Assembly: GCA_011109175.1 (NCBI GenBank)
Contig: RDEW01000014.1
Coordinates: forward strand, 806,001 to 870,000
Source of the DNA: Dicyema japonicum
Taxonomy: Eukaryota > Animalia > Dicyemida
Reading direction: 5' to 3'
Length of the DNA stretch: 64,000 bases
Under the pieces are notes generated by a model that was given only the letters and a program-made list of their open reading frames with translations, had not been told where the DNA came from and did no database searches. Position numbers and translations under genes: made by a program. Every line of letters begins with the position of its first letter. Within the stretch, counting starts at the first letter, position 1. Of this stretch, positions 2,871 through 48,954 are shown piece by piece.

Positions 2871-3330
2871 TTAGGAGACCCTCTCTCGGGAACCGACACA
2901 TTCCCTGTATGTCCGTTTTTTGGGCGATTTTTCATGTTGGATAATGTGCTACCTGACTTTCTCAAACGGGATTGATTTTGTCATAGATGGTCTTGACGGC
3001 TCTAGACTGAATACAATTAATCTTCTCAACGTTTGATCTTGCAAGGTTTGTTGCCCAAGCGGCACACCATAACTTTGGCTCAACAAAGTGTGTATACATG
3101 GAACCTATCGTTTAATTAAAAGTCGTTGATATTTAACCAAGTTCAATTTTCTTACTGACGATTACATTCAACACACGTTTGCTGAAAGTCATCAATGTGT
3201 AAAAAGGTTACTCCAATAATATTAACTCTCTTCAAAAACTGTTGGGGGAATAATTTGGCATTCTTTATTTGATGTAGAGAGAATTCGATGATTTCTCCAT
3301 GGACGTAGACATTGTGTTAGATTCTGAACA
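2870..3330 (-). mobile_element. LINE RT C-terminal fragment
   Basis: Minus strand reads MYTHFVEPKLWCAAWATNLARSNVEKINCIQSR, similar to the WATNLS region of the LINE at 26917-27183. Confidence 0.6.
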
Positions 3331-3339
3331 CATGTTAAG

Positions 3340-3445
3340 TATGTGGCGCAGTCCAACGAGTGCCGGGTAAAGGCCTGATGGTCCCGTATTCGAATCTCGT
3401 TGCTGTACATTCTGGCTGAGGGTTCCACGCATCTACGAGAAATTG
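3340..3445 (+). mobile_element. Diverged tRNA-derived SINE head
   Basis: B-box-like ATTCGAATCTC followed by GCTGTACATTCTGG..GGTTCCACGCATCTACGA, shared with the SINE at 22254-22566. Confidence 0.7.
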
Positions 3446-4160
3446 GATATCGACTTGATTGAAATTACCACCTCAATACGAAAATGCTATAAGTAGTATT
3501 AACGAAATATTACACCTCATGGATACTTACTTCATGGGGGAAGTAATAAATGGTTATACGAAGAAGAACATACTGGCTTGGTTTTTTCCCTTAATTTAGT
3601 TAGTTTTGTCTTTGGTGGGTAATAAAAATTATATGTCTCTATCTACGATTCTCAGAAATTAACCCTTCTTATGGTTTAGATATCCATACTGGTATAGAGT
3701 ATCCCTGGTTACATTACATGTCAGGCTATTTTACGGCCATTTGACATCACTATTCTGAAAAAAACAGATAAAAGATGTAAAATAGTTGAAATAGCCACGT
3801 GGTGCTTCGTGGCTAATTGGTTGAAGTTTCTGTTTTGTTCGTCTGTTCCTCCTCTGTCTTCCTATTAGATTGGCTTCATGTGATTCACCAGTCTAGGTGG
3901 TGCCCAGTGCCAGGCCGGCACGAAAAAGGATCATTTGCTCTCCCCCACTCCACTGGATGGGTTTCCACAACTGCAACTATGGATGTCTTTTACCCTTTAT
4001 GCTGATTCCGGATGGATTCTGTTTCTGTAGAAGTGGAAACTGGATACATTTAATTAGTTGTTTACTTTAACTACTTTCTCGGTGTATCCGTGGTTAATAA
4101 ATAAATAATAAAATAGAAATTGACATAAAACTTTTAAAAAATCCTATTTAATGCTAATGG

Positions 4161-4873
4161 ATCAACAAATGCTCGACAACTTGGAACTATGGCTCTCGAA
4201 GCGGAGACTTGACACATCAGCAGCAAAGTCCTTTGTCACACTGTTTACCACCTACAAGAGACAGCTCTGTATCGAACCAAAAGTATTTATGAAGAACGAA
4301 GCTATCTCTGTTAACAAAACACCGAAGATTCTGGGAGTAACCTTTGATCAGTGACTCACCTTTATCCGGGATGTTGAAAACAGAGTAACTTCTGCTCTGA
4401 AAAAATGAGAATTTTAAAAGTGCTCTCAAAAACACTTAGAGATCAAACTGGGATCCTTGCCACGATTTATAAACAATTTATCCGACAAACGATGACGTAT
4501 GCAAGTCCTTCATGGGCAATGCAAATGTCACGATCTTCCACATTGAAATTATCTGCAATCGAGGAGACTGCAATAAGGTTAATTGGACCAGATCATAATA
4601 TCCAACCTATTGAAAACTTTTTAATTGAACTACAACGGAAACTATTAAAGGAGACTGTTCTACCGAGCTGCCCTCTATTCTATATACTATCGAAATATCT
4701 ACAATCATACAGAAATTTTGAGCCGATGCCATATCCAATGAGAAGAGCTGTTCAGGTTTCTCGACCCCGCCGGACTCGCCCAAATTTTTTTCTGTCTGTG
4801 ATCACTTAGTTAGATGAGAACATTTATTTATTTCTATTTGATCCAGTGATCCTGGTGGTAATAATAATAATAA
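4161..4873 (+). mobile_element. 5'-truncated LINE (family B) 3' end with TSD
   Basis: KILGVTFDQ and YKQFIRQTMTYAS motifs; (TAA)n tail; 13-bp TSD TTAATGCTAATGG at 4148-4160 and 4874-4886; homologous to 21770-23065. Confidence 0.85.
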
Positions 4874-5406
4874 TTAATGCTAATGGGGCCAAGAACAAAG
4901 TCTGACATAATTGTGAAGAAACCGGATGGTAGTGTATTGTTTGAATAGGAGACATTATTAATTTTCTGTGAACAGCATGAAGGCTCATCAATCCCGAAAA
5001 TACATACTGGATGCTGTCTTATAAAAGCTGTCTAAATTTATCTAAAAAATAAATTACCTGAGAAAATATTAATACGTTCACGTGGAAATTGCCTGTTCCA
5101 CTTCTAGGCGTGAAGACTTTCATGCATGGAAATTATTACTAACTTTATGGGCATCTACACAATTTCCTGAGTAACAGACATCCCCTAATTCAAGAAACAA
5201 AGTTTACATCAAACTCATACTTGTACATGAAACAATTCCTTTTGCATACCCATCAATTTTAAGAAATCTTTTATTTTAGACGATCCATATAGTAAAATTA
5301 TTTCAATCTAGGTTAACATTAAGAAGATTTTATTATTGCATTAAGAAGATATCTTGTCTGACAAAATATGCACCAAACCACTTTTTTAATTGAACATGTG
5401 AATCTC

Positions 5407-5651
5407 GGAGTGCGGAAAAAAAGTCAAGCGGATTTCGTTAACGGACTTGACTTTTTTTCCGTTTTGCGCTAAATTTCGAAAATTTATAAGGGAAAAATTT
5501 TCAAAAATGGAAAAAAAGTCAAGTATTGAAAAAATTTTTAAAAATTAAAAGATGCTAGTAGTATCACAAAAATGCGATATAAACTAAAAAAAGACAACTT
5601 GAATTTTTTTCCGCTTGACTTTTTTTCCACTTGACTTTTTTTCCTACAACC
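5407..5651. mobile_element. MITE-like non-autonomous DNA transposon (GG..CC termini, 9-bp TSD; MULE- or Merlin-like)
   Basis: TSD GTGAATCTC at 5398-5406 and 5652-5660; inverted arrays of GGAAAAAAAGTCAAG / CTTGACTTTTTTTCC; second copy at 58376. Confidence 0.85.
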
Positions 5652-6924
5652 GTGAATCTCTGCTAAGACTTTTACGCCCACCATTACTTTTAACAATCTA
5701 GACAACAAGGACTTCAAATTCTATACGATATTACGATTTTGATTGTGCACACTTATTGTGCCTCACATAGAAAACAAAGTGACAATTTTCCTGACATCTC
5801 CTCTCAGCCTTGTTCTCTACTAAAATGATACTTATGACATTACAGCTGGGTTAGAGACCATAAGGGACCGGTCTCCAAGTTAGAAGAGGTAGAAAAATTT
5901 AATTTCTCAAAAAAGTGTTAGAATGAGATTTGTGGATCATTCTAGGTTAGGGACCACAAGGCATGAAATTATACTCATGTGGTTAATGTCAAAAAAATCA
6001 TTAACATTAATTGAAAGTTTAATGACATTTAAATAACCTTGAAACTGTCTATTTTTATTGATAACAAAAATTCAGATCAGGTTCGGGGAATAGCTTTGGT
6101 CTATACCGATTTGGTCAAATCCTTGCTACCTGTCGTTCCTTGAAAGTTAACACGCTTGATCGATTCAAGCTTATGTTCTTGCCCCGGATTGAGTCTGAGT
6201 CTTGCTAACACGGTTGTGCAACAGCGGACCAACAAGTAGGATGATGTTCCGAATAAATTTATTCTAAAACATTGCTTTTATCTTGGGATGACCCTATTAT
6301 CTTTACCAAAATAGTAACATCATCGAAGCAATCATTCAATGTCCACCACACCTGAACTCTCTCGAAAACTGGTTTGTTGTAAACCATCTCTCCCCGTCTC
6401 ATTTGATATTACTTTTCATTTTTTCATATTGACCGTCTGCTGAATTTTCTTCAATACCATTTTCAGAGAAATGTTTCCAAACGTTACTTTGAGTTAAATT
6501 TTAAAAACTAGTAACCATCTCAAAACACGTGGAGGAACAAATGCCTGTCGCAAAAATCAACATACTAAAGCTGTGTCAGACTATTTTCCGGCCTAAGCAG
6601 AGAAGGTCTGAGCATCATATATAAATAATTCATTCTAAGTGCAATTAACTAGGGAAGCCCTTGTTGGCCAATATCCTCTCTCAATTCTATCGACAAATTG
6701 CTAAAAATTCAAAACATTCCGTTCAGAACGACAACCGGATGGACCATCTATTAATCACCTCTGGAAAACAAAACCCTTCCAATTGCCGACTATCTGGGAA
6801 TGAGAGCTATACAATTTCTCCCAAACCTACAATTTTTACCATCTCATGTCACTTTTTTTGAAAGTAATTCTATAACAAAATTCTGCGCCTGCTACAACCC
6901 AAAGGACATTCGGGTTAACCTAGC

Positions 6925-7690
6925 TCATTATTCCACAGGATCACCGGGTTAAAGGAAAGGGAGACCTCAAATAAGTGACCCAGAACCGACAAGGAAGTTG
7001 ACGAGGTCGAGAGGATGGGCATGCTGTATTACCATTTTCATTGTGCACTTAGAGTAGGTTTCATGGTATTTGAACAAGATTTCGTTTAAGATACTGCTTT
7101 AATAATTTTTTTAGGTTCAAAAAGATGTGTTTTGAGATGATTGAACTTCAAATAATTATTCAGATGGTAGGTTTGTTTGGTCTTCATAACTGCTGTGGTT
7201 CCGGTTCTCAACATGTTTAGAGAAGGGGAGTCCTTAGTCGAATATAACTCCGATGATTTTTGGTATGGTGGTGACTGTAATAGTTAAGTCATCAAGGAGA
7301 ACATTTGGCTTGATATTTTATTCTCTTCTAAATGTACCAAAAAGTCGTAAATGATTTTGTGAGATAGACATCAAGACCCAGTTTTCCAAGCCATGTGGTT
7401 AGGGTATTCACCGTTCTTTGCACAACTTGACCGGTGGTTTGATAATCTTTATTTCTGCAGGAAATGACGATGTTGTTTGTGTAAGAGAGTACAGTTTTCT
7501 TACGGTGGTCTTGGAATAAAGATTTGATTTTGATAATTTTTTCAGTCTTGTAAAATCAAAAATATTTACTAGAGTCTACAAGTGTATCTGGCTTAAAGAG
7601 GAAACAAAATATTTTATTTTATTTCTCAGAATGTCGCATCAATAAGGATCCCGAAGAATGAGCGTTCTTTGCAGTTGAGGCTCTTTCTAG
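6925..7690 (-). mobile_element. Decayed LINE 3' portion
   Basis: Minus strand QRTVNTLTTWLGKLGL (RT C-terminal region) and tail motif CCGGTGATCCTGTGGAATAAT near 6930. Confidence 0.6.
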
Positions 7691-7899
7691 TACAATTGAA
7701 AATGCTCTCCACTCTTACTCTCCATCCAATTGGTGGGGTTATTTAGTTGTTGTCCTTCCGCTATTGGTTTCTCGCAAGACTGTGCTTGTGATGGAAGAGG
7801 ATTTTTCTCTACTAACATGAAAAACTGATTCGATCCATTCTGGAAGGCAGTATCCTTTTGACTATTCTGCTTCTCGTGATCATACACGAGAGTCCCGAA

Positions 7900-9375
7900 A
7901 TCGAACGAGGATGGTAGGTTCTTAGCCTCAAGAAGGCGGTTCGCACGAAATTATTTGAAGGAGAAGCTCTTAAAATCTTCAAAAAACCTTAGACATCTTC
8001 CATGTGTGTTGAAAAACATTCACCTCCCTCTCACAATGCGATTCGTTCCATCACATCCAAAAGTTAGCCCCATTTTACCCAAGGGAACACCGACTGTATG
8101 GATAGAATGAGACCATTTGAAAAACATTACTTTTCGTCCGAACCAAATTCTATCGGGAGATCTGCCAAATGCAATCCGTCACGTCCTGTTCTCTGACAAC
8201 CTGATCGCCTTTGAAAAGAAAAAAGGTGAAGTTTGTCCGATCGCTGTTGGTTTTGTCTTTAGGAGACTAGCTGGCAAGATTACCTGCAAGAGATCTATTA
8301 CCATGATTGCACATTTTCTAAGCCCTTCTCAACGTAGACTTGATTACGATTCTGCTGCAAAGAAGCAGCCTATTCAGTACAAATTTTCAAAAGCTCTCAA
8401 AATATTCTTGGACGCGGTGTTCTGAATTAGTTTTGAACTAAACAGGTATAAATAAAATTTATAATTGTGGACTATCCGATGTTGATTTTACTCAAGTCGT
8501 TTGTCCAAGTCAATTTTGTCTTGTATTCCTTGGTTATCCGATGACTTAGAGTGTAATGAGGAAAGTGATGGGCGACAAACATCTACTTGAAGAGTGTACT
8601 TAATCGGATGTTGCATCCTTGATCATCATAACTCTTTGTCCTCCCTAAGAACAGCCTGTCCATTCTTAGAATTTCTTATATCCTTGAATGACCTTAAGTC
8701 ATCTCTCTTGTATTGATTCTGTCTTCCATAAGGCGGTCGAGCATGTTTGTAACGTTCGTTTCGACGACGGCTCTTTGAAACAGGCCACACTGTTTGTCAA
8801 GTTTGGTGGCCTTGGGATTCGATCTTCATTTGATGTTTCTCTGCCGCATACCTCTAGTCTCTTGTGACCTCCGATTCCATGGAAAAGAAGATTCTACGTT
8901 CTTTCCCCTTATTTTCTTCTGACTAGTAAGGAGGTAACCCTATAAAGATTTGGAATCGTTCTTATTCACACATCCTCCCATCCCAGAACATGAGACGGAC
9001 TCTGGAAAGTGTTATTTGCATAATTAATTTTGAAAAAATTCTGGAGTCCTCCAAACAAACTTTGGTGTTTAACGACTTCATTCGAGCCTCACTGCGACTT
9101 AGACTGAATGAGTGCAGATACGGTGAGTGAATTGAGATTTTGAACTACATCCACTCGATTGCAGGAGGAGTGCCGGCAAGACCTCAAGCATTAAACGAAG
9201 TCGTTCGACAGGCTTTGAGAGTGGTTGCTTCCCCTCGGTACTCGAACACGTCGGGATGTGTAGAAAACGTACAGATGGAGTGACAATCCATTCGTTGCTC
9301 GAGAACCCCTTTCAATGGCTGTTCAATCGCTGGGAAGGCCGAGACGGTGAAGCAGTGGAAGTACACTGACCTCCC
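7900..9375 (+). mobile_element. Decayed CRE-clade retrotransposon (RT + RLE remnants)
   Basis: NLIAFEKKKGEVCPIAVGFVFRRLAGK matches NLTGLGKKDGGIRPIAIGNVFRRLSAK of the 23.4-26.4 kb element; HPLDCRRSAGK near 9150. Confidence 0.8.
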
Positions 9376-40413: not shown

Positions 40414-43400
40414 ATGTCGTTGGTTCGGTTGTTTTCATCAATTGAGGATGAGCTATCTACAATAAAGTCAATATTTAGTAATACAACGTTGTCATATATT
40501 CACGATGAGGTGATTAATATGTTTTACTGGTAGACAACCGAAATAGAAGTTGAGTTAAAATGTGATGAGAGGATAGAGTATGAAGATCGTTATGTAATAT
40601 TAAAACTAGCAATAAACAAAAAGTACCCAGATATGTAATTATTAAGTAATATTATAGAAAACCACATTATCAAGTAATAGATAGTTGTGGAATAGAATTA
40701 ACATCAATATATAATATTATTAATAAATTATTTGATAAAAAAGACAAAAGTTATGTTATTTTTGATGCTCTCTGTTGTATTCACCAACTATTATTTCCAT
40801 CATCTTATTTGACAGATACGTTTCATGAATTATCACACAATGAGGGTAAATGCTCTGAAGTAATCTTAAACTAATTTGTAGTCTTCAAATTGTAACACTA
40901 ATGAAGACAGTGAAGTTGGTGAATCAAGTCAGATAATATCCATTGAAAGATCACAACAACGATTGACAACAAATATTGATGACGTTTCCCTTGATACCTG
41001 TGATCGTTGTAAAGTTTCTACTCTAAAAAACCTTATCCCTGAAGGTGGTATTATTAAATTCAAACGTCGTCGATTCTTACTCGGTCCTTGTTTAGGTGAT
41101 AATATATATAATAAAAGGTCACAATGACCGTGGAGCTGGTAATCGTGTATTAATAGAGGATAAACCAGGTAAGAAACTCTATGTTGTGACTGATTGGAAT
41201 ATTTGTCTTCCTAATCCAGATACTCCATTTGGATTACAAGTCAAACAAGTATTTATTATTAATATTAAAGCGTATATTAAATTGTGTAAAGGAGGCTAAA
41301 CGTGTTAGAAGTCTTTGTCATAATAATATTATTAACTTTATTTCATATCGTCATCTTAAAATTAGTAATAAATTGGTTAATTTTCAGGTATTATCATTAT
41401 TATTATTAGATTCTTCGACCATTTGTGACTGGGCTTAATTTAAGACAATTTTTACAAATTAATCAGGCTCCCGCTAATTTGGAGTTTATTCGTCAATGTG
41501 CATCCGAAATACTACCAGCCATCGCATTTTTACATCAAAATGGCACTGCGCATGGATTTATCAGAGTTTATGTTTTGTTTACTCCAGTCGAGCAGTATCT
41601 TTATTTCTACTTATTCTATCTTCCTTTTGGGGGATGCTTTTTTTGATAAACGAATGGAAGAAATTTATGACATTTGCATACATCCGAGTGAGGCTGTTTC
41701 ACCTGAATTTGAACTTTCAGTAATTCAGTGGAGTGATATTTACAGATTTGTATTATTTATATTTATTGAAGGGACTTATTCTTTTATGTCTTTCGTTAGG
41801 CAATGTTACTGAATTTACTGAAAATCCTGAAATCCCTGTATATCTTCCTATTATATTAAGAGATATGCTTACGAGGTTATTTAGTTTATTCATATTAGAT
41901 TCTTATCCCCCAAAGTTGAAGAAAGATGGACAATTGAGCAGTTACTGAAACATCCTTTTGTGCAGAGAGACCATGAAGACATGTCTTATTACAAGGAGGG
42001 TAATTATATTAATTATAAGAAAACTATAATTTGGAAGATTTAGAAAAATTATCAAAGGATAGTCGATTAATGAGTGACTTTAGTGACCATGTTTTACTTG
42101 GTAAGGGTGGATTTGGTCAAGTAGTGAAGGTTAATTGGTTGGTTTTAAACGAAGGCTAAACAAAAGTTGGATGGAATAGTATATGCTATAAAATGGGTGG
42201 ATTTGAGTAGTAAAAGTCGAAAGGTTATCGAACGCATCCTTAGAGAAGTACTTTTACTATCAAAACTAAATAATGAAAATATTGTTAGGTATTTATTTTA
42301 TTTATTAAGATATTATAATTCTTGGGTTGAAGGAATTAATAATTTGGATTTATGTTTGCAATCCGATGACAAGGATACAACTGGTGATGACTTTGGAGGA
42401 TCTGAGGAAGAAGATGATTCAGAAGTAGAAAGTGAGGGAAATTCAGAAAATGAAGCAAGTGAAGGAAATGAAGAAAGCGAAAGATTTATAAGATTCAAGG
42501 GAATAGACAGTAGTAGTGAGGAAGTAGAGGATAAAGAAGTAAATAAATCAAGCAGTCCTTCAGTAAGATTTGAAGGTGGATCAGAGCAAGAAATTATAGC
42601 CAGTGGAGTAAAACTGAAATTCCAAAAGAAAAAGAGAAATCAAATGAAATAAAAAAGTTTTTATTTATCCAGGTATTATTATTATTTGATTTGTTGATGG
42701 AATGCTGTGAACGCAGTACATTGAAGAGTTTAATAAAATCTGATATATATAAAAGTATGGATATTGTTTGGCAATTATTCAGGTCAATTCTTAATGGATT
42801 AGATTATTTGCACGACAATGTTTATATATTATTTTATTATTAGAGAATCATTCATAGAGATTTGAAACCAGAAAATATATTCCTTGATATTAATATGAAG
42901 GTTAAAATTGGTGATTTTGGATTGGCTATATTAGGGGATCGTAGTGTTTTATCAGTATTATTTTATTATTACAAGGTTGATCAAATTAATCCTTATATTC
43001 CCCCTCAGGAATATGGAAAGAAAAAACCATCAGGTACTGTGGGGACAATGTTATATATTGCCCCTGAAATGATGAGTAAATCACAATACTCACAGGTCGT
43101 TCATATTATTATGTAGAAAGTGGATATGTATAGTCTTGGATTGATTTTGTTTGAAATGTGCTATCACTCTATGACAACGTCATCTGAACGTGTTAATGTC
43201 TTTAGAAGTTTACGTAGTCCTGAAATTGAATTTCCTATTGATTTTACGGGTAATGAAGACGACGCACATGTTTGTTATTTATTAATATTAGTATAAAGTT
43301 ATAAAGTCTCTATTAAATCATGATCCATCACAAAGACCTACAGCCTCAGATCTGTTATACTCAGGATTAATTCCTGCTCCTTTAATACCAGAATCACAAG

Positions 43401-45664
43401 CATTTGAAATGATAAAGACAGCTGTTAATATTTATGAGAATACATCAAGTGATCTAAGGAATGTATTATTCGATATGAAGAGGGAGTATACATTGGATGA
43501 TTTGGGCAACTATTTTTATATAACAGATAATATTAATGTTTGTTTTATTTATATTATAGTCTACCATGGGTTATAATTTTGATTCTGAATTGAGATGGTT
43601 CCTCATCAAGAGAATAATAGGAATATTCAGACTACATAATGCTGTTGAAGTAAAGACTGCCTTAATGATGCCAACTTTTAATAATGAAATATATCAAATT
43701 AACAAACCTATTACTCTTATGGACAGAATGGGCACTGTCATTACACTTCCAACTAATTTACGATTATCATTTGCTAGATATGTGGCGCAGAGGAGAGTCA
43801 CTTGTATGAGACGGTTTTCTGTGGATTCCGTGTTTGTTTATCCTAATGAGAGTAATCATCCCAAACAATTAACCGAGTGTGGATTTGATATAGTATCTAC
43901 TATTCCTAGTCCTTTTTATGATGCTGAAATGCTTATAATTAATCAACAAAATAGTACTTTCGTGTGGTTTGGGAGGTGATTCACCTGGAATTGATAATCA
44001 CATATTCAAAATTAATCATGCTAATATTTTGACTGGCATTTTAAATTATTTTAAAATTCCCGCGACCAACATTCTTCAACAATCCGTATTATCTCTGAAG
44101 GACTGGATATTAGTGGTGTGAGTGATAAACCCTCTTTAATAAACCCCCAACCACTGCCAGTAATATACTCACTGTCTGATGATGCCAAAAATCAACTATG
44201 TGATGTGTTTTCTAAGGAATTTAATGAATTATCAGAGCAGAATCATACTTTAAACAAATAATAACATCTAAGCGAGTATTTATAATTTATAATAATAGGC
44301 ATTCAAAATTATACAAGAAGGTATAGAAAATTTAAATGAAATTATTAAATTAGCAGAATATATGGGTTTTACTTCAAAAGTAATAATATATTTAAATTTA
44401 GATAATATTAAGCATGACAATGTCATTAAATTTAAATATATATTCTGGAATTATGTTTGAATTGATTATTCGACGGAATGATTTAACGATACCTAAAAAT
44501 ACTGTAAATTCAGTAACCTGCTCATTTGGAGGAAGATATGATGGATCAGTTTATTATTTATTTAAAATAAGATTGATTCATTTCTAAATATGGAAACAAA
44601 TGGAGACAAATTGTGTTGCACAAAGTTATGTGCTGTGGGTTTTGGATTTATTATCGACTCTGTGGGTGAATTGGTCCATAAATCGAGAATAAATTCGGTT
44701 AATATTAATTATAATGATAGAAGGGAACAACTACATTTAATTGGTCATCCCCTCAATGGGTGACGTATTAGTAACTCATCCTTTCGGTTTTGGGGGGTCA
44801 TTTGATCAAAAGATTTGTAGCATTCTCTGTCGCTTATGGCAACAAAAAGTGTGTGCAAGCTATTTAACATGTGATTTGGTTAATATTAATATTATTATAG
44901 GGAAATGACGAATTGGTTAATCTTTGTATTGAACTCAAAATAGCTTATCTTTTAATAGTAAAGGATGGGGAAATGAATAATTGTACTGTAAATATAATAT
45001 TATTTATTTTGTAGATTAGAAATTGTTATCCATCATTATCTAATGTTAAACGAATTGACCTCAATCAGGCTATTAAAATGGTTTCATCATATAGAAGTAA
45101 AATTAGGTTTTATTTATTCTAATAGTAGGGAAAATCATTGTCATTCTCCATTTGAGACTACTCTTTCTGTTTTGCCTCCATTGACTGAATCTTCTGTTTT
45201 ATTCTATATTATTAGTAGATTAAAACTGTTTATCAATTACCACCGTTTAAGGTTATATACTTTGAAATGGATACTGATATACATCCAAATGAACCTCATT
45301 CAGAACAGTCAATTAGACAGGCACTTAAAGGAACTATTTCTAAACTCAATTCCTCCCAACGTGGATATATTATTGTCGTTGACTCCTTAGATAAGGAACA
45401 ACTTAGAAAATTTCACTATCTTTTAGAAGGGGTTATTTCTCTATCTTATCATAGGTACGACCTAATGATGATCATAAAGGTGCAATGTCTCACTTGACTA
45501 GTTCAATGTATACTTATAGTTCAATATATAGGAATGAAAAAATGACTCGATATATTGGGAGACTGGCTGATACTATTCAAATCTTTAGAAAAGAGGATGC
45601 ATGCCCCTTTGTGTTTTTATATTCCTATAAATTTTTATATTTCGTTACATTTTTCGCTTTGTAA
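40414..45664 (+). CDS. EIF2AK4: eIF2-alpha kinase GCN2 (RWD, pseudokinase, kinase, HisRS-like, C-terminal domains), many tiny introns
   Basis: LGKGGFGQVVK, REVLLLSKL, YYNSWVE, acidic insert, LFIQME, HRDLKPENIFLD, KIGDFGLA, GTMLYIAPE, KVDMYSLG, LPTNLRLSFARYVA, HPKQLTECGFDIV, GGRYD. Confidence 0.95.
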
Positions 45665-45775
45665 TATTTTTTTTGTTTAGTGGGTTCTATTATTTTTACT
45701 AAGCCTTAATTATTCACAAGCAATTCACCATGATGTTACTCCTTATAACTAAGCTCCAGAAATACAAAAGACCCA

Positions 45776-45877
45776 AAACTCTGCCCTAATAACATTTAAC
45801 AGGACTAACTCTGTCATTAGGGATAGAAACATTTAGTTAATATAACTGCGTCAAACTCTGCCCTAATAACATTTAAC
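45776..45877. repeat. 25-bp exact direct repeat flanking 52 bp
   Basis: AAACTCTGCCCTAATAACATTTAAC at 45776-45800 and 45853-45877. Confidence 0.85.
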
Positions 45878-46654
45878 CTACCAACTAACCACCTACATTG
45901 GGAATCAAGGACCATTTTATGGTATTTTTAATTCCTTCACAATTTTAAAAGACCGGAGTATCTGGCCATGGCCTTTGGTTTCCAAAAAATAAATAAAGAT
46001 AATACCAACTTTCGTGATAAAGTTTGGATTTTTAAAGCGCCTCAAAATGATCCATGATTTGGTTTTTACTAATTCCATCAAAATCATTGATATCTTGAAC
46101 AAAGTTGAACTATTGGTTTCGTCACTATGCCTTCTAGACGACTACAAGATTTCTTGTTGCCCAGGTCCAGCTTCGATTTCTGCGCTACACCAAATACATT
46201 TTATTGATCTTTGTGAGAGTCTGCTATGGCTGTTATTTTTTTGTTAGCTGCTGGTTTTTTTTCACTTGAAGGGACTGGGGGTAAATAAATAATGCTTAAT
46301 TTTCAAACTGATCCGTCAAGCCATAAATAACGATACTCAATTAGTTAAATAACCCTCACTCACTTGTAGATTACCACCAGCTATTAAGTGGGACTCAGCA
46401 AATGCCAGTCGTTCCCATAGATCGTTTAACTTTGGCCTTGTAGACGAACAGTGTACTAATTCAGGGCATTAAAAGGTGATTTGCTGTCAACTCGGTGAGG
46501 TTGCAAAAGAGATGTTTTTACTTCATTCAGTTTACGTACAACGGTAAAGAGGAGTGGTGGGAAACTCAAATATTGCTATTAATTCTTATAGTCAAGAAGA
46601 TATTCTTAAATTGTATTTTATCAAATAAATTATATATTAAATTAAAATATTTAA

Positions 46655-47904
46655 ATGAGAGGATTGTTTAATTGGAGACACATTAAAGTACCAATATTAA
46701 GGAATCTTGTAAATAACAACACTGATTTTATTACTGAGAATTCTCGATATATTGAAAGAATCATTACTGAGAAAGAACTCCAGACTAAACTAACAGGACG
46801 TTCCTTACGTGTAAAATACGGAATTGACATCACGGGATCATTTCTTCATTTGGGTCATGCTGTTAATTTGTGGTTATTAAGAGATCTACAAGAAAGAGGA
46901 CACGTGGTAGACTTAATTCTTGGTGATTTTACTACACTTGTTGGAGACCCTACAGATAAACTGTCTCCTCGTATCAAAAATGAAGAACTTGAAGAGAAGA
47001 TGACTTCCTATGTCAAACAGGTATCGAGGATCCTTTTAACCTCTGCGAAAAGTCTTCGGGTTTTCCGAAACAGTGAGTGGTATTCCAAAATGTCAACAGT
47101 TGATTTTTTAAACTGACTGGTATGATGACACATTCAAGACTTATTGAACGTGAAATGTTTAAAAGGAGAATAGAACGAGGACAAAGCATAACTATGAGTG
47201 AAATGCTTTACCCTCTCCTTCAAGGATATGATTCTGTTGTTTTAAAGAGTGATCTTACTGTTGTTGGATCTGATCAACATTACAACGAAGATGTTGGTCG
47301 TTATTTACAAGTAAAGCATGGCCAATCACCTCAAAGCATAATACTAACTCCAATTACAGCAGGATTGGGGACATTACAAGCAAAACAAAGCAAATCAATG
47401 GGAAATTATATTGCATTAGATCTTAATTCTACTGATATGTTCGCCATGGTTATGCGTCTTGATGATAAAAATATAATTGATTATTTTAATGTTTATACGA
47501 CCATGCCATTATCTGACATACAACACATTCAACAGGAAATCAATGCTGGAGGGAATCCTAGAGATGCTAAATTAAACCTCGCTAAGGCCATCACTTCTAG
47601 ATATTACTCCGATTCTGTCGCTTTGGAAGAATATAACAACTTTGTTGATACTTTCTCTCACAGGAATATGAAATCTAAAGAGTGTACAATTTCGAATGAG
47701 ATGAGTCTAGAGGATTTTGCTATGGAAAAATTGGAGCATTCGTATGGTAAGAAGGTAATCCATGTGATTGCTGGTGCTGGGGGAGTTAGAGTTAATGATG
47801 AAAAAATATATAATTTAAGTAAAGTTGTAGTTCGTGATGGTGATTTTGTTAAAATTGGTAAAAAGAATTTATATTACATTAAAATATTAAATAATAAAGT
47901 TTGA
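46655..47904 (+). CDS. tyrS: Intronless bacterial type-2 (TyrZ-like) tyrosyl-tRNA synthetase with putative mitochondrial presequence; 1-nt frameshift at ~47112
   Basis: LRVKYGIDITGSFLHLGH (HIGH), GDFTTLVGDP, RNSEWY, YPLLQGYDSV, GSDQ, KQSKSMGNYI (KMSKS), NPRDAKLNLA, S4-like GGVRVNDEKI..VKIGKK. Confidence 0.93.
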
Positions 47905-47917
47905 ATTAATAATTGTT

Positions 47918-48073
47918 ATGTTGTCTGGATTGGTAGTAGTATTTAATATGATTAGATAACATTATCTATTGGAGTATATGCGGGAATATTACTACAACAA
48001 CACTATCAAGTATTATTTACTTAATTATTAGTTTAATAATATTCCGTCCAAATATTCAAGTCAATCAAATTAA
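47918..48073 (+). CDS. STMP1: Short transmembrane mitochondrial protein 1 (DUF4535-type micropeptide); 3' end may be affected by an indel
   Basis: MLSGL|ITLSIGVYAGILLQQHYQ|FNNIP after removing introns 47933-47955 and 48010-48031; resembles the STMP1 G.Y.G.YL.QNY.IP pattern. Confidence 0.72.
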
Positions 48074-48954
48074 GGAATTTGTTGATGCTCTTTACCATTT
48101 TATTACTAATTTACTCTCTCAATATTGATTTATAATTCCTTTGAGATTTGTATTATTTTATTTACACTTGTTGGGTATAAGTTGTTCATGGTGGAACACT
48201 GGGTAATTCTCTTCTCAGACGTGTAGTCCATATAACATTCGTTCACTCAAAAATTCTTCAATTATCCATAAAACAGGAGAGCCTGATGCAACGCACTGTC
48301 AAATTGATCACTCATCCTTGTTTATGTCGAGATACCACCTCAGAGTTTAGATAGAAAAGGCAGTAACCACAAGGTCGATCAAAATGAAAACCAAATGGCT
48401 TTTCTTTGGTTTTTAGGCTTCACAAGCAAAAATTTCTAATATCAGAGAATGTAACTAAATTTAAAGTTTACTTCAAGTTTTGGAGAGCTTAAATAGACAC
48501 TTAACAGTGGTCCTGATGTTTGTTATTGCATTTTCATACAGCAGTGTTCTTTTTTCGTGATTAGATGATACAGCAGTATATACTTCGCAGAGAGTTATGA
48601 GTGAGATCTAGAGTCCCCAACTTCTGGATCCTGGTAATCTACGCAGTGCCTCATCACAAAGTATATTTCACTTATTTCTTAAAAAAAGGCTTGCCAAAAT
48701 GTTCCAAAGAGATTTGTCCACTTGATGACGTTGGTAGTGAGTATGATGGTCAATTAATCCAACAGAGATAAAATTATAGTAGTGATTCCAATGTTGAAAT
48801 CGATGATAATATTCTTTCAGTCATTAGGTTTATTCTGTGAGGTCACTCCCCATGTCGCTCAGAATTACCGGAAATTCCACTAATATCAGAAGTAACACGA
48901 AACAAGGACAACTCCGAGTTTGTCACCATTAATCGAAATGTTTTGTCTCATTAT

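Follow-up and report, generated by a model that had tools for sequence, protein, structure and literature searches.

A stretch of 64,000 nucleotides from the genome of the dicyemid Dicyema japonicum (hereafter the window) carries, on its forward strand at 46655–47904, a tyrosyl-tRNA synthetase (TyrRS) gene of bacterial appearance. Does this gene belong to the animal, and what might it do there? Our analysis makes it likely that the gene is a dicyemid nuclear, horizontally acquired, and functional type 2 TyrRS gene, whose product would be imported into mitochondria and would replace the type 1 enzyme YARS2. To our knowledge, bacterial genes that have turned essential in animal cells are rare, and the well-supported cases are few.

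A reading frame broken by an assembly error

The first-pass annotation had taken 46655–47904 as one reading frame and missed an assembly frameshift. The 1250-nt span is split by a TGA at 47114–47116, which closes ORF A (46655–47116), and coding continues in the –1 frame as ORF B (47104–47904). The PF00579 profile runs contiguously over the break, with positions 4–104 on ORF A and 105–287 on ORF B; hence the coding sequence has lost nothing, and the break comes down to a 1-nt shift within the T-run at 47104–47109. We compared the region with contigs of four public sequencing runs from three studies (X1, X2, X5, and X6; among them a run of the same sample set and one of a related organism, organism B). 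An extra T behind 47103 was present at 100% of contig depth in all four runs, and the frameshift is therefore an error of the assembly, not a feature of the organism. With seven T at 47104 instead of six, the site reads D-F-F-K-L-T-G-M, and the corrected ORF is 1251 nt long and encodes 416 amino acids. A homologue on a contig labeled Octopus sinensis (L008) also reads through at this site without interruption. Homopolymer errors are to be expected here, since the Dicyema assembly combined PacBio RS II and Illumina data (PMC6736024). A tiny intron at the break was considered as well; all GT..AG candidates between ~47021 and 47138, tried by hand, ran into a stop or left the frame broken, and the contiguous profile together with the reads carrying the extra T led us to dismiss it.

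The restored coding sequence consists of part 1 (amino acids 1–151, 46655–47107) and part 2 (amino acids 153–416 and the stop codon TGA at 47902–47904; 47110–47904). Part 1 comprises an N-terminus of presequence-like composition (amino acids 1–23, 46655–46723), the tyrosine-binding KYGIDITG, the HIGH motif in the form HLGH (46847–46858), and the type 2 signature GDFTTLVGDPT (46922–46954). Part 2 contains YPLLQGYDS (47209–47235), GSDQ (47266–47277), KQSKS as a form of KMSKS (47383–47397), a helical domain for anticodon binding, and, at the C-terminal end (about 47680–47901), a divergent S4-like domain recognized by alignment and model. All four motifs quoted previously (LRVKYGIDITG..HLGH, YPLLQGYDS, KQSKSMGNYI, and the C-terminal tail GGVRVN...IGKKN) were recovered. 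Bacterial homologues align collinearly along the whole coding stretch, which has no intron, as had been stated. HLGH, KQSKS, KYGIDIT, GDPT, YPLLQGYDS, and GSDQ are all kept, as are 28 of the 28 invariant columns of a bacterial alignment (A1), including every invariant catalytic residue; judged from its sequence, the enzyme appears to be catalytically intact.

Might the frameshift at 47104–47116 nevertheless be real in the animals, and the gene a decaying relic of a transfer? We regard this as very improbable. The frameshift is present in the window, and the L008 homologue has a 1-nt frameshift of its own (near L008 14003–14010), but the latter falls elsewhere in the gene and comes from the long-read assembly of a different organism, and the former is countered by the extra T in the runs of three studies and by the errors expected of this type of assembly. 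The gene is also under purifying selection. Codons changed in the differences listed for organism B were synonymous in 21 cases and non-synonymous in 7, with substitutions mostly at third positions in both frames, and comparison with the L008 homologue gave a pN of 0.29, far below a pS of 0.82 (saturated). The preserved catalytic residues and the transcription of the gene, described below, likewise speak against decay. L008 shows microsynteny with the window and has introns of 30–45 nt; despite its Octopus sinensis label, the contig is probably that of a dicyemid parasite.

Affinity to bacterial type 2 TyrRS

Family and PDB searches were run on the two pieces separately, and the pieces were joined with an X at the break for scripted computations. 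Family profiles and signature motifs both place the protein among the class Ic TyrRS enzymes. The two pieces reached 65.4 and 86 bits with PF00579, for which the cut-off is 21.1, and 92.1 and 131.1 bits with TIGR00234 (tyrS), for which it is 113.8, such that the longer piece passed alone and the pair lay far above the cut-off, covering positions 10–404 of the 406 in the profile. In phmmer searches against the PDB, the Thermus enzyme (1h3e) scored 100.7 and 75.7 bits on the two pieces, and human mitochondrial TyrRS, i.e. YARS2 (2pid), 33.8 and 30.5 bits. More generally, type 2 entries in the PDB reached 100–110 bits against the longer piece and type 1 entries about 31–34 bits; no particular affinity to type 1 or to YARS2 was thus found.

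With the query kept out of its construction, a type 2 HMM gave the dicyemid protein 457 bits, versus 121 bits for a type 1 HMM. The order is reversed for human YARS2 (2PID; 334 bits with type 1, 147 bits with type 2) and for two fungal mitochondrial TyrRSs (300 and 273 bits with type 1, 137 and 134 bits with type 2; the first value of each pair is that of Neurospora CYT-18, 1Y42). YARS2 and CYT-18 have the same presumed job as the dicyemid protein, namely that of an imported, nuclear-encoded, bacterial-like class Ic enzyme for mitochondrial tRNA-Tyr. A grouping with eukaryotic YARS2 was not seen in this indirect comparison, which consists of two-way profile tests on PDB sequences, the trees being free of any eukaryotic YARS2 sequence. 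An AF2 model of the protein (pLDDT 86.6) was also submitted to a fold search (Foldseek), in which the top six matches were Thermus TyrRS, the best of them TyrRS-tRNA complexes (TMq 0.68), and 2pid ranked 46th. Profiles, PDB matches, fold search, and two trees agree, in line with the earlier proposal, in identifying the predicted protein as a bacterial type 2 (Thermus/TyrZ-like) TyrRS, neither YARS1 nor an orthologue of YARS2.

The domain order is like that of Thermus thermophilus TyrRS (1H3E) and Helicobacter pylori TyrRS (6BYQ), with a Rossmann catalytic domain, a helical domain, and an S4-like C-terminal domain, and the protein shares HLGH, GDFTTxxGDPT, YPLLQGYDS, GSDQ, and the invariant residues with bacterial type 2 enzymes. 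Unlike theirs, the dicyemid gene is an animal nuclear gene with host-like, AT-rich codons and an acid-free, basic N-terminal extension, and its C-terminal domain is unmatched by the Pfam S4 and SYY_C-terminal models. The S4-like tail claimed by the first-pass annotation gave mixed results. The domain aligns over its full length with the bacterial one and is modeled confidently as two helices plus a beta-sheet (pLDDT 84–91); by contrast, neither Pfam S4 nor PF22421 matched it even at E ≤ 10, while bacterial P0003 scored 44.5 and 26.2 bits. In both dicyemids the domain has moved beyond Pfam recognition, yet it is conserved between them.

In a tree rooted on type 1, the split between type 1 and type 2 received 100/100 support. 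A careful IQ-TREE analysis united the dicyemid pair (window and L008) with 100/100 support and placed it three supported nodes deep within bacterial type 2 (100/100, 97/87, and 99/91). An AU test, with the group chosen after inspection of the tree, rejected a position of the dicyemids outside bacterial type 2 (p = 0.0007). KQSKS is shared with the sister clade, where it occurs in 21 of 21 bacteria, compared to 1 of 27 other rows; it is a natural variant, common to 24 bacterial rows. The bacterial origin asserted earlier, more precisely a horizontal acquisition from a bacterium of the KQSKS-bearing type 2 subclade, is thus well supported, and the acquisition dates to a common ancestor of three or more dicyemid lineages. 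With 1.3–1.4 changes per site, the stem branch of the dicyemids is a long one, which leaves the exact sister group and the donor unsure. An exhaustive search for relatives found none above 42% identity, and the nearest named bacteria, at ~40–44%, are spread over several phyla (a Francisellaceae MAG, Sungbacteria, Niyogibacteria, and Saccharibacteria of the CPR, Bdellovibrionota, Ktedonobacter, and Fibrobacterota); no single donor can be named from this search.

By another route, the gene might descend vertically from an old type 2 TyrRS of eukaryotic organelles, or might have been obtained from another eukaryote. According to Huang and Gogarten (2008; PMC2530860), plants obtained their organellar (plastid/mitochondrial) TyrRS from chlamydia-like bacteria, hence such genes do circulate in eukaryotes. 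Like the dicyemid gene, the plant gene came horizontally from a non-organellar bacterium. However, the plant transfer is ancient, lies at the base of plants, and serves plastids too, whereas the dicyemid transfer falls within a bilaterian lineage, and the donor subclades would differ. Several observations make the eukaryotic route improbable: the only eukaryote-labeled relative among the top matches is the dicyemid-like L008; the top matches that we inspected lie in bacterial gene contexts; the tree puts the dicyemid pair well inside a bacterial clade with which it has KQSKS in common; human and fungal mitochondrial TyrRSs are type 1; and the gene is intron-free, where the mean for this genome is 6.2 introns per gene (PMC6736024). 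We retain a direct acquisition from a bacterium as the preferred reading.

Genomic setting and expression

Two features of the gene, its lack of introns and the bacterial identity of its nearest relatives, would suit bacterial contamination or a chimeric assembly join outside the animal genome. The setting of the gene argues against this. Upstream on the same strand lies the 3' part of a multi-exon GCN2-like gene (42844–45660, traced in six-frame segments), which encodes a protein kinase domain (HRDLKPEN, DFG) and has its later exons in changing frames. Between the two genes, about 145 nt 5' of the TyrRS start codon, we found a dispersed, SINE-like host repeat of ~170 nt (46341–46510), as judged by its copies genome-wide and by contig depth. 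At least 251 candidate copies, 75–89% identical, lie on many contigs of the same genome, and contig depth was 3000–8800 over the repeat compared to about 370 over the TyrRS gene. An interspersed host repeat this close to the gene indicates that the flank is host DNA.

Downstream, a 28-nt GT..AG intron (48661–48688, forward strand) is present in the window and absent from the X5 contig, which indicates that X5 derives from RNA and that the downstream neighbor is a spliced eukaryotic gene. Both neighbors are therefore spliced, as had been noted. Two further candidates did not hold up: a 20-nt stretch missing at ~48341 in the X5 contig lacks GT..AG ends in every equivalent register and was rejected as an intron, and a joint between 47898 and 48008, which has GT..TC ends and a side of 20 nt and was seen in a single contig of X2, was taken as noise.

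Independent contigs join the TyrRS gene to this downstream spliced gene: record 8 of X1 spans 46600–48900, and records 15 and 16 of X2 overlap across the same region. On the upstream side, no short-read contig crosses the repeat that separates the GCN2-like gene from the TyrRS gene. A chimeric join is thus countered independently downstream, while the upstream join is interrupted by the repeat. Read depth over the TyrRS gene equals that of its flanks, the composition of the gene (GC 34%, GC3 26%) is host-like, no bacterium is more than 44% identical to it, and its homologue sits in the partly syntenic, tiny-intron DNA of L008. Against this background, we consider contamination or a chimera to be the least credible of the readings, with hardly any probability left to it. 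The earlier claim of a real integration is upheld by the downstream join, the upstream repeat, and the host-like GC3.

The TyrRS gene is transcribed, as judged from run X5, which is indexed as 'DNA?' and whose RNA nature we infer from the one canonical intron missing in its contig and from its coverage pattern. X5 covers 46666–47796 within the ORF and leaves the intergenic flanks uncovered. The gene is accordingly not a silent copy beside an intact YARS2, an outcome that was looked for and not seen. The linkage to host genes across independent runs, the host-like base composition, the expression, the signs of selection, and the homologues in organism B and L008 collectively mark a horizontally acquired gene that became fixed in an animal genome.

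An apparently missing YARS2 and a putative mitochondrial role

If the gene is functional, which tRNA does the enzyme charge? Other PF00579 loci in the genome encode a cytosolic TyrRS with an EMAPII-like tail (on contig C79), a cytosolic TrpRS, and a bacterial-type TrpRS. Searches of the genome with PF00579, TIGR00234, and the type 1 profile revealed no second bacterial-type TyrRS and no canonical YARS2, consistent with the absence suggested by the first-pass annotation. The assembly is ~76–77% complete by BUSCO and CEGMA according to its authors (PMC6736024), and a canonical YARS2 could be hidden in a gap.

The N-terminus offers further evidence. In the window protein, acidic residues begin at position 24, as the claim of an acid-free extension implied, and in L008 at position 29, compared to a median of 6 in bacteria; N-terminal extensions that are acid-free and basic occur in both dicyemids and in 3 of 83 bacterial homologues. 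The mitochondrial minicircle genome of Dicyema sp. encodes trnY (PMC6543705), and we found no other enzyme fit to charge its product.

TyrRS enzymes recognize bacterial-type tRNA-Tyr by rules that differ from those for the eukaryotic type: cytosolic-type TyrRS cannot take over a bacterial-type tRNA-Tyr, and bacterial-type TyrRS normally does not charge eukaryotic cytosolic tRNA-Tyr. This difference may explain why a bacterial rather than the cytosolic enzyme would be found in the role. The presequence-like N-terminus, the status of the protein as the sole bacterial-type TyrRS, the published trnY, and the known inability of cytosolic TyrRS together suggest that the enzyme serves the mitochondrion and charges mitochondrial tRNA-Tyr. 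Most likely, it replaces the usual animal mitochondrial enzyme.

A less likely reading, to which we give modest but real weight, is that the gene was acquired horizontally and is functional outside mitochondrial translation, either as a cytosolic or moonlighting paralogue or by charging an imported tRNA, with mitochondrial tyrosine charging done otherwise or unneeded. The hydrophobic moment of the N-terminus did not rise above that of shuffled controls, so amphipathicity is not significant, and the tRNA-binding C-terminal domain has diverged beyond Pfam recognition; both would suit such a role. However, a separate cytosolic TyrRS exists on C79, bacterial-type enzymes normally spare cytosolic tRNA-Tyr, the acid-free N-terminus is kept in both dicyemids and rare in bacteria, and trnY would be left with no other fit enzyme. 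We therefore continue to favor mitochondrial import.

In the scenario that we propose, an ancestral dicyemid took a TyrRS gene from a bacterium of the KQSKS subclade of type 2. The gene then shifted to the base composition of the host while staying intron-free, and it is transcribed and under purifying selection. The acid-free, basic N-terminal 23–28 residues would direct import into mitochondria, and the imported enzyme would charge the mitochondrially encoded tRNA-Tyr in place of YARS2. In Thermus, tRNA-Tyr has a long variable arm to which the S4-like domain at the C-terminus of the enzyme binds, and the divergence of this domain in dicyemids may mean a re-fitting to a mitochondrial tRNA-Tyr without such an arm.

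Non-bilaterian animals offer a partial parallel, in that mitochondrial aminoacyl-tRNA synthetases were lost alongside mitochondrial tRNA genes (Pett and Lavrov, 2015; PMC4558845; the text mentions neither 'horizontal' nor TyrRS). There, too, the nuclear set of mitochondrial synthetases was remodeled in the presence of an unusual mitochondrial genome; the enzymes were lost and cytosolic ones stepped in, whereas in dicyemids the role seems to have passed to a foreign enzyme, a bacterial one. In the published literature that we searched, there was no report of this TyrRS gene or of horizontal transfer in dicyemids. On balance, we lean toward the view that this would be the first documented replacement of YARS2 in a bilaterian by a bacterial enzyme of the other subfamily, with a C-terminal domain remodeled to a reduced tRNA-Tyr.

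The suggestion that the enzyme might be a drug target has little basis because dicyemids are parasites of cephalopod kidneys, with no medical or clear economic concern. The published assembly carries a warning, in that homopolymer errors break real genes, and the TyrRS gene itself provides a clean marker for dicyemid phylogeny. A central enzyme of protein synthesis has apparently been exchanged for a foreign one, which would be unusual for an animal, and the case is relevant to the question of how readily synthetases and tRNAs can change partners. If true, it would amount to a natural experiment on which organellar synthetases are replaceable by cytosolic ones and which are not.

Reading frame of the TyrRS gene

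From sequence, the tyrosyl-tRNA synthetase (TyrRS) gene at 46655–47904 on the forward strand had been read as one open frame. All motifs quoted in that first-pass annotation were found in the gene; the frame itself is in fact broken in two. ORF A (46655–47116, forward strand, 153 aa) stops at a TGA, while ORF B (47104–47904, forward strand) is open in the –1 frame relative to ORF A. In the Pfam alignment, PF00579 profile positions 4–104 fall on ORF A and 105–287 on ORF B, and TIGR00234 positions 10–139 and 143–404 are divided in the same way. Since the profiles are continuous over the break with no residues missing, we placed the defect at a single-base shift in the six-T run at 47104–47109. 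A frame-repairing micro-intron was also considered, and was rejected because none that mends the frame was found on inspection.

Contigs from four public sequencing runs were placed on 45600–48900: X1 and X2 (one sample), X5 (another study), and X6 (a related organism, organism B, about 92% identical). Each of the four has one T more than the assembly, inserted after 47103 and present throughout the contig depth (100%). The resulting seven-T reading, ...TVDFFKLTGMMTH..., agrees with bacterial homologues and with a second dicyemid copy on contig L008. Because the extra T recurs in four runs, the frame break is an assembly error, of a type expected from the mix of sequencing platforms: the assembly (67.5 Mb, 377 scaffolds, GC 36.7%; the window has 36.8%) merged PacBio RS II with Illumina data (PMC6736024). 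The corrected TyrRS ORF is 1251 nt long and encodes 416 aa. Same-organism read contigs showed more small indels relative to the assembly (45734, +9 nt; 45819, +1; 46037, –2; 48044, +2; 48549, +1). These may be residual assembly errors or heterozygous alleles, and other gene models may be broken as well.

Type 2 identity and bacterial ancestry

The proposal that the protein fits bacterial type 2 (Thermus/TyrZ-like) rather than type 1 YARS2, the animal mitochondrial TyrRS, was borne out by PDB scores, profiles, a fold search and trees. In a PDB sequence search, the two pieces scored 100.7 and 75.7 bits against Thermus thermophilus TyrRS (1h3e; 6bqy and 6byq were similar), only 33.8 and 30.5 bits against human YARS2 (2pid), and about 31–44 bits against E. 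coli and Bacillus type 1 TyrRS. A type 2 HMM constructed without the query gave the dicyemid TyrRS 457 bits versus 121 bits for the type 1 HMM. In the reverse test, human YARS2 scored 334 bits with the type 1 profile versus 147 bits with the type 2 profile, and fungal mitochondrial TyrRS scored 300/273 versus 137/134 bits. When the second piece was modelled with AlphaFold (mean pLDDT 86.6), the fold search put Thermus TyrRS-tRNA complexes on top (TMq 0.68), with 2pid at rank 46. The dicyemid protein is a member of the bacterial type 2 family and not an orthologue of YARS2. It retains every residue that is invariant across an alignment of 36 type 2 sequences, with HIGH as HLGH, KMSKS as KQSKS and the tyrosine-pocket residues kept; judged by these residues, the enzyme looks catalytically competent.

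Behind one eukaryote-labelled protein (P0001), the best database matches are bacterial, at 41–44% identity, and no relative closer than 42% turned up when 1.84 billion representatives were searched exhaustively with HMMER. The top-match contigs that we inspected have bacterial gene surroundings (dnaA-dnaN-ruvABC; LysR with integrases; pseudouridine synthase). The best representative match, P0137 (762 aa; L127 6001–8289, a Logan SRR24524899 contig), joins a type 2 TyrRS to an acetyltransferase-like C-terminal part; its neighbours are phage-type integrases and a DNA methylase, so this TyrRS copy lies on a bacterial mobile element. In P0153 and like proteins, an N-terminal B3_4 domain is joined to a type 2 TyrRS.

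Two trees, phylogeny being a check proposed in the first-pass annotation, agree in nesting the window and L008 proteins in bacterial type 2. In a quick tree (85 rows, type 1 as outgroup), the pair forms a clade on a long stem within a strongly supported type 2 subclade distant from type 1. In a careful tree (52 rows, LG+C20+F+G4), the pair is supported at 100/100 and the enclosing bacterial clades at 100/100, 97/87 and 99/91. A discrete character concurs with this placement: KQSKS occurs in 21/21 sister-group bacteria and the next two rows outward, and in 1 of the 27 other rows. Holding bacterial type 2 together to the exclusion of dicyemids, a group set after the tree was known, was rejected by an AU test (delta lnL 38.2, p 0.0007). 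Named relatives in the subclade span CPR groups, Bdellovibrionota, a Francisellaceae MAG, Ktedonobacter and Fibrobacterota, and no single phylum among them is singled out as the donor. Very probably, then, dicyemids acquired a functional type 2 TyrRS horizontally.

Integration, expression and a dicyemid-like contig from octopus

That the gene is truly integrated, as first proposed, is upheld by a host repeat, spliced neighbours, host-like composition (GC 34%, GC3 26%) and a downstream join in independent contigs. Upstream, the gene adjoins a multi-exon GCN2-like kinase gene; a dispersed repeat of about 170 nt (46341–46510) ends 145 nt before the TyrRS start, and short-read contigs are broken there. 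At least 251 candidate copies of it (75–89% identical) are spread through the genome, one of them 7.8 kb off on the same contig (89%). DNA-run contig depth over it is 10–25 times that of the flanks, with a wider high-depth zone at 46155–46598, and it looks like a SINE-like element. Downstream, X1 and X2 DNA contigs run unbroken from 46600 to beyond 48900 and connect TyrRS to a spliced gene, whose 28-nt GT..AG intron (48661–48688) is missing from an X5 contig. Genes of D. japonicum, a dicyemid that parasitises octopus kidneys, average 6.2 introns, with a mean length of 38 bp (PMC6736024). In the same downstream gene, a 20-nt stretch at about 48341–48363 is missing from an RNA-derived X5 contig and has GT..AG ends in no equivalent register; the stretch represents either a polymorphic deletion or a micro-intron of non-canonical type.

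X5 covers TyrRS at 46666–47796 (depth 17), shows the neighbour spliced and skips the intergenic flanks; hence TyrRS is transcribed and unspliced. The reported lack of introns thus stands, and the L008 copy is also intron-free. From the 3' end of TyrRS onward, X5 has no coverage at 47820–48041 and a contig at 48044–48201.

The only eukaryote-labelled relative, P0001, is named 'Octopus sinensis tyrosine--tRNA ligase-like' and lies on L008 (GCA_006345805.1, VCDQ01002185.1, 552 kb). L008 (8977–23270) has several genes in common with the window in local order, with exon gaps of about 30–45 nt. The octopus assembly therefore probably includes DNA of a parasite here, most likely of a dicyemid inside the sequenced animal. 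Its TyrRS copy is 57% identical to that of the window and open at the window's break site, and has its own 1-nt shift at YPLL/QGYDS. The NCBI model joins ribosomal protein L12 (uL11) exons to TyrRS and omits 33 codons around this frameshift. Since the window, organism B and L008 all have a copy, the gene goes back to an ancestor shared by at least three dicyemid lineages. For organism B, 28 codons are listed as changed; 21 of the changes are synonymous and 7 non-synonymous, and they lie in both apparent frames. Between the window and L008 copies, pN is 0.29 and pS 0.82 (saturated), which points to long-term purifying selection.

A putative mitochondrial role

The acid-free N-terminal extension noted earlier was confirmed: both dicyemid proteins open with a basic, acid-free stretch, and D/E first occurs at position 24 (window TyrRS) or 29 (L008 TyrRS). 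Among 83 bacterial homologues, the median position is 6, and only three reach 24 or beyond. This composition fits a mitochondrial presequence; the hydrophobic moment of the N-terminus is not above that of shuffles. In Thermus TyrRS, the C-terminal S4-like domain touches the long variable arm of tRNA-Tyr. The dicyemid domain is alignable with the bacterial one in both copies, folds in the second-piece model and is conserved between window and L008; however, its basic 'SKSEARRLI' helix signature is gone and, unlike bacterial relatives, it has no Pfam S4 or PF22421 match. This divergence may reflect adaptation to a mitochondrial tRNA-Tyr without a long arm.

By the identity rules of TyrRS (the N1-N72 pair), the eukaryotic cytosolic enzyme is a poor stand-in for a bacterial-type one. 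Zverkov et al. reported trnY among the tRNA genes on Dicyema sp. mitochondrial minicircles, so an enzyme charging mitochondrial tRNA-Tyr is needed; trnW is missing from their list, as are trnD, trnF and trnT (PMC6543705). The dicyemid type 2 TyrRS would be imported into mitochondria and charge this tRNA.

A PF00579 search of the genome contigs yielded four loci, classed by translation: the window TyrRS (C46), a cytosolic TyrRS with an EMAPII-like tail (C79), a cytosolic TrpRS (C1) and a bacterial-type TrpRS (L001; C313:422954–423868, reverse strand; HVGN, KMSKSD). This last, mitochondrial-type gene has tiny introns and looks intact. No further bacterial-type TyrRS was found in the genome by TIGR00234 (E ≤ 1) or the type 1 profile. 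The proposed search for a canonical YARS2 thus found none by any of the three profiles, and YARS2 is likely absent from the dicyemid genome, the assembly being about 76–77% complete by its authors' measures (PMC6736024). We consider it likely that the type 2 enzyme is the mitochondrial TyrRS, having taken the place of YARS2, and quite likely that the joint claim, horizontal acquisition together with a mitochondrial role replacing YARS2, holds.

Plant organellar TyrRS is likewise of foreign bacterial origin (PMC2530860), and the mitochondrial synthetase set has likewise been remodelled in non-bilaterian animals (PMC4558845). In our literature search, no animal turned up for which horizontal acquisition of a mitochondrial aminoacyl-tRNA synthetase had been reported, and the two dicyemid genome papers mention neither this gene nor horizontal transfer. 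The suggestion of a possible drug target should be dropped. The gene is a new member of an established enzyme family, in a host where it would not be expected, and its relevance is to synthetase evolution, to mitochondria and to gene transfer into animals.
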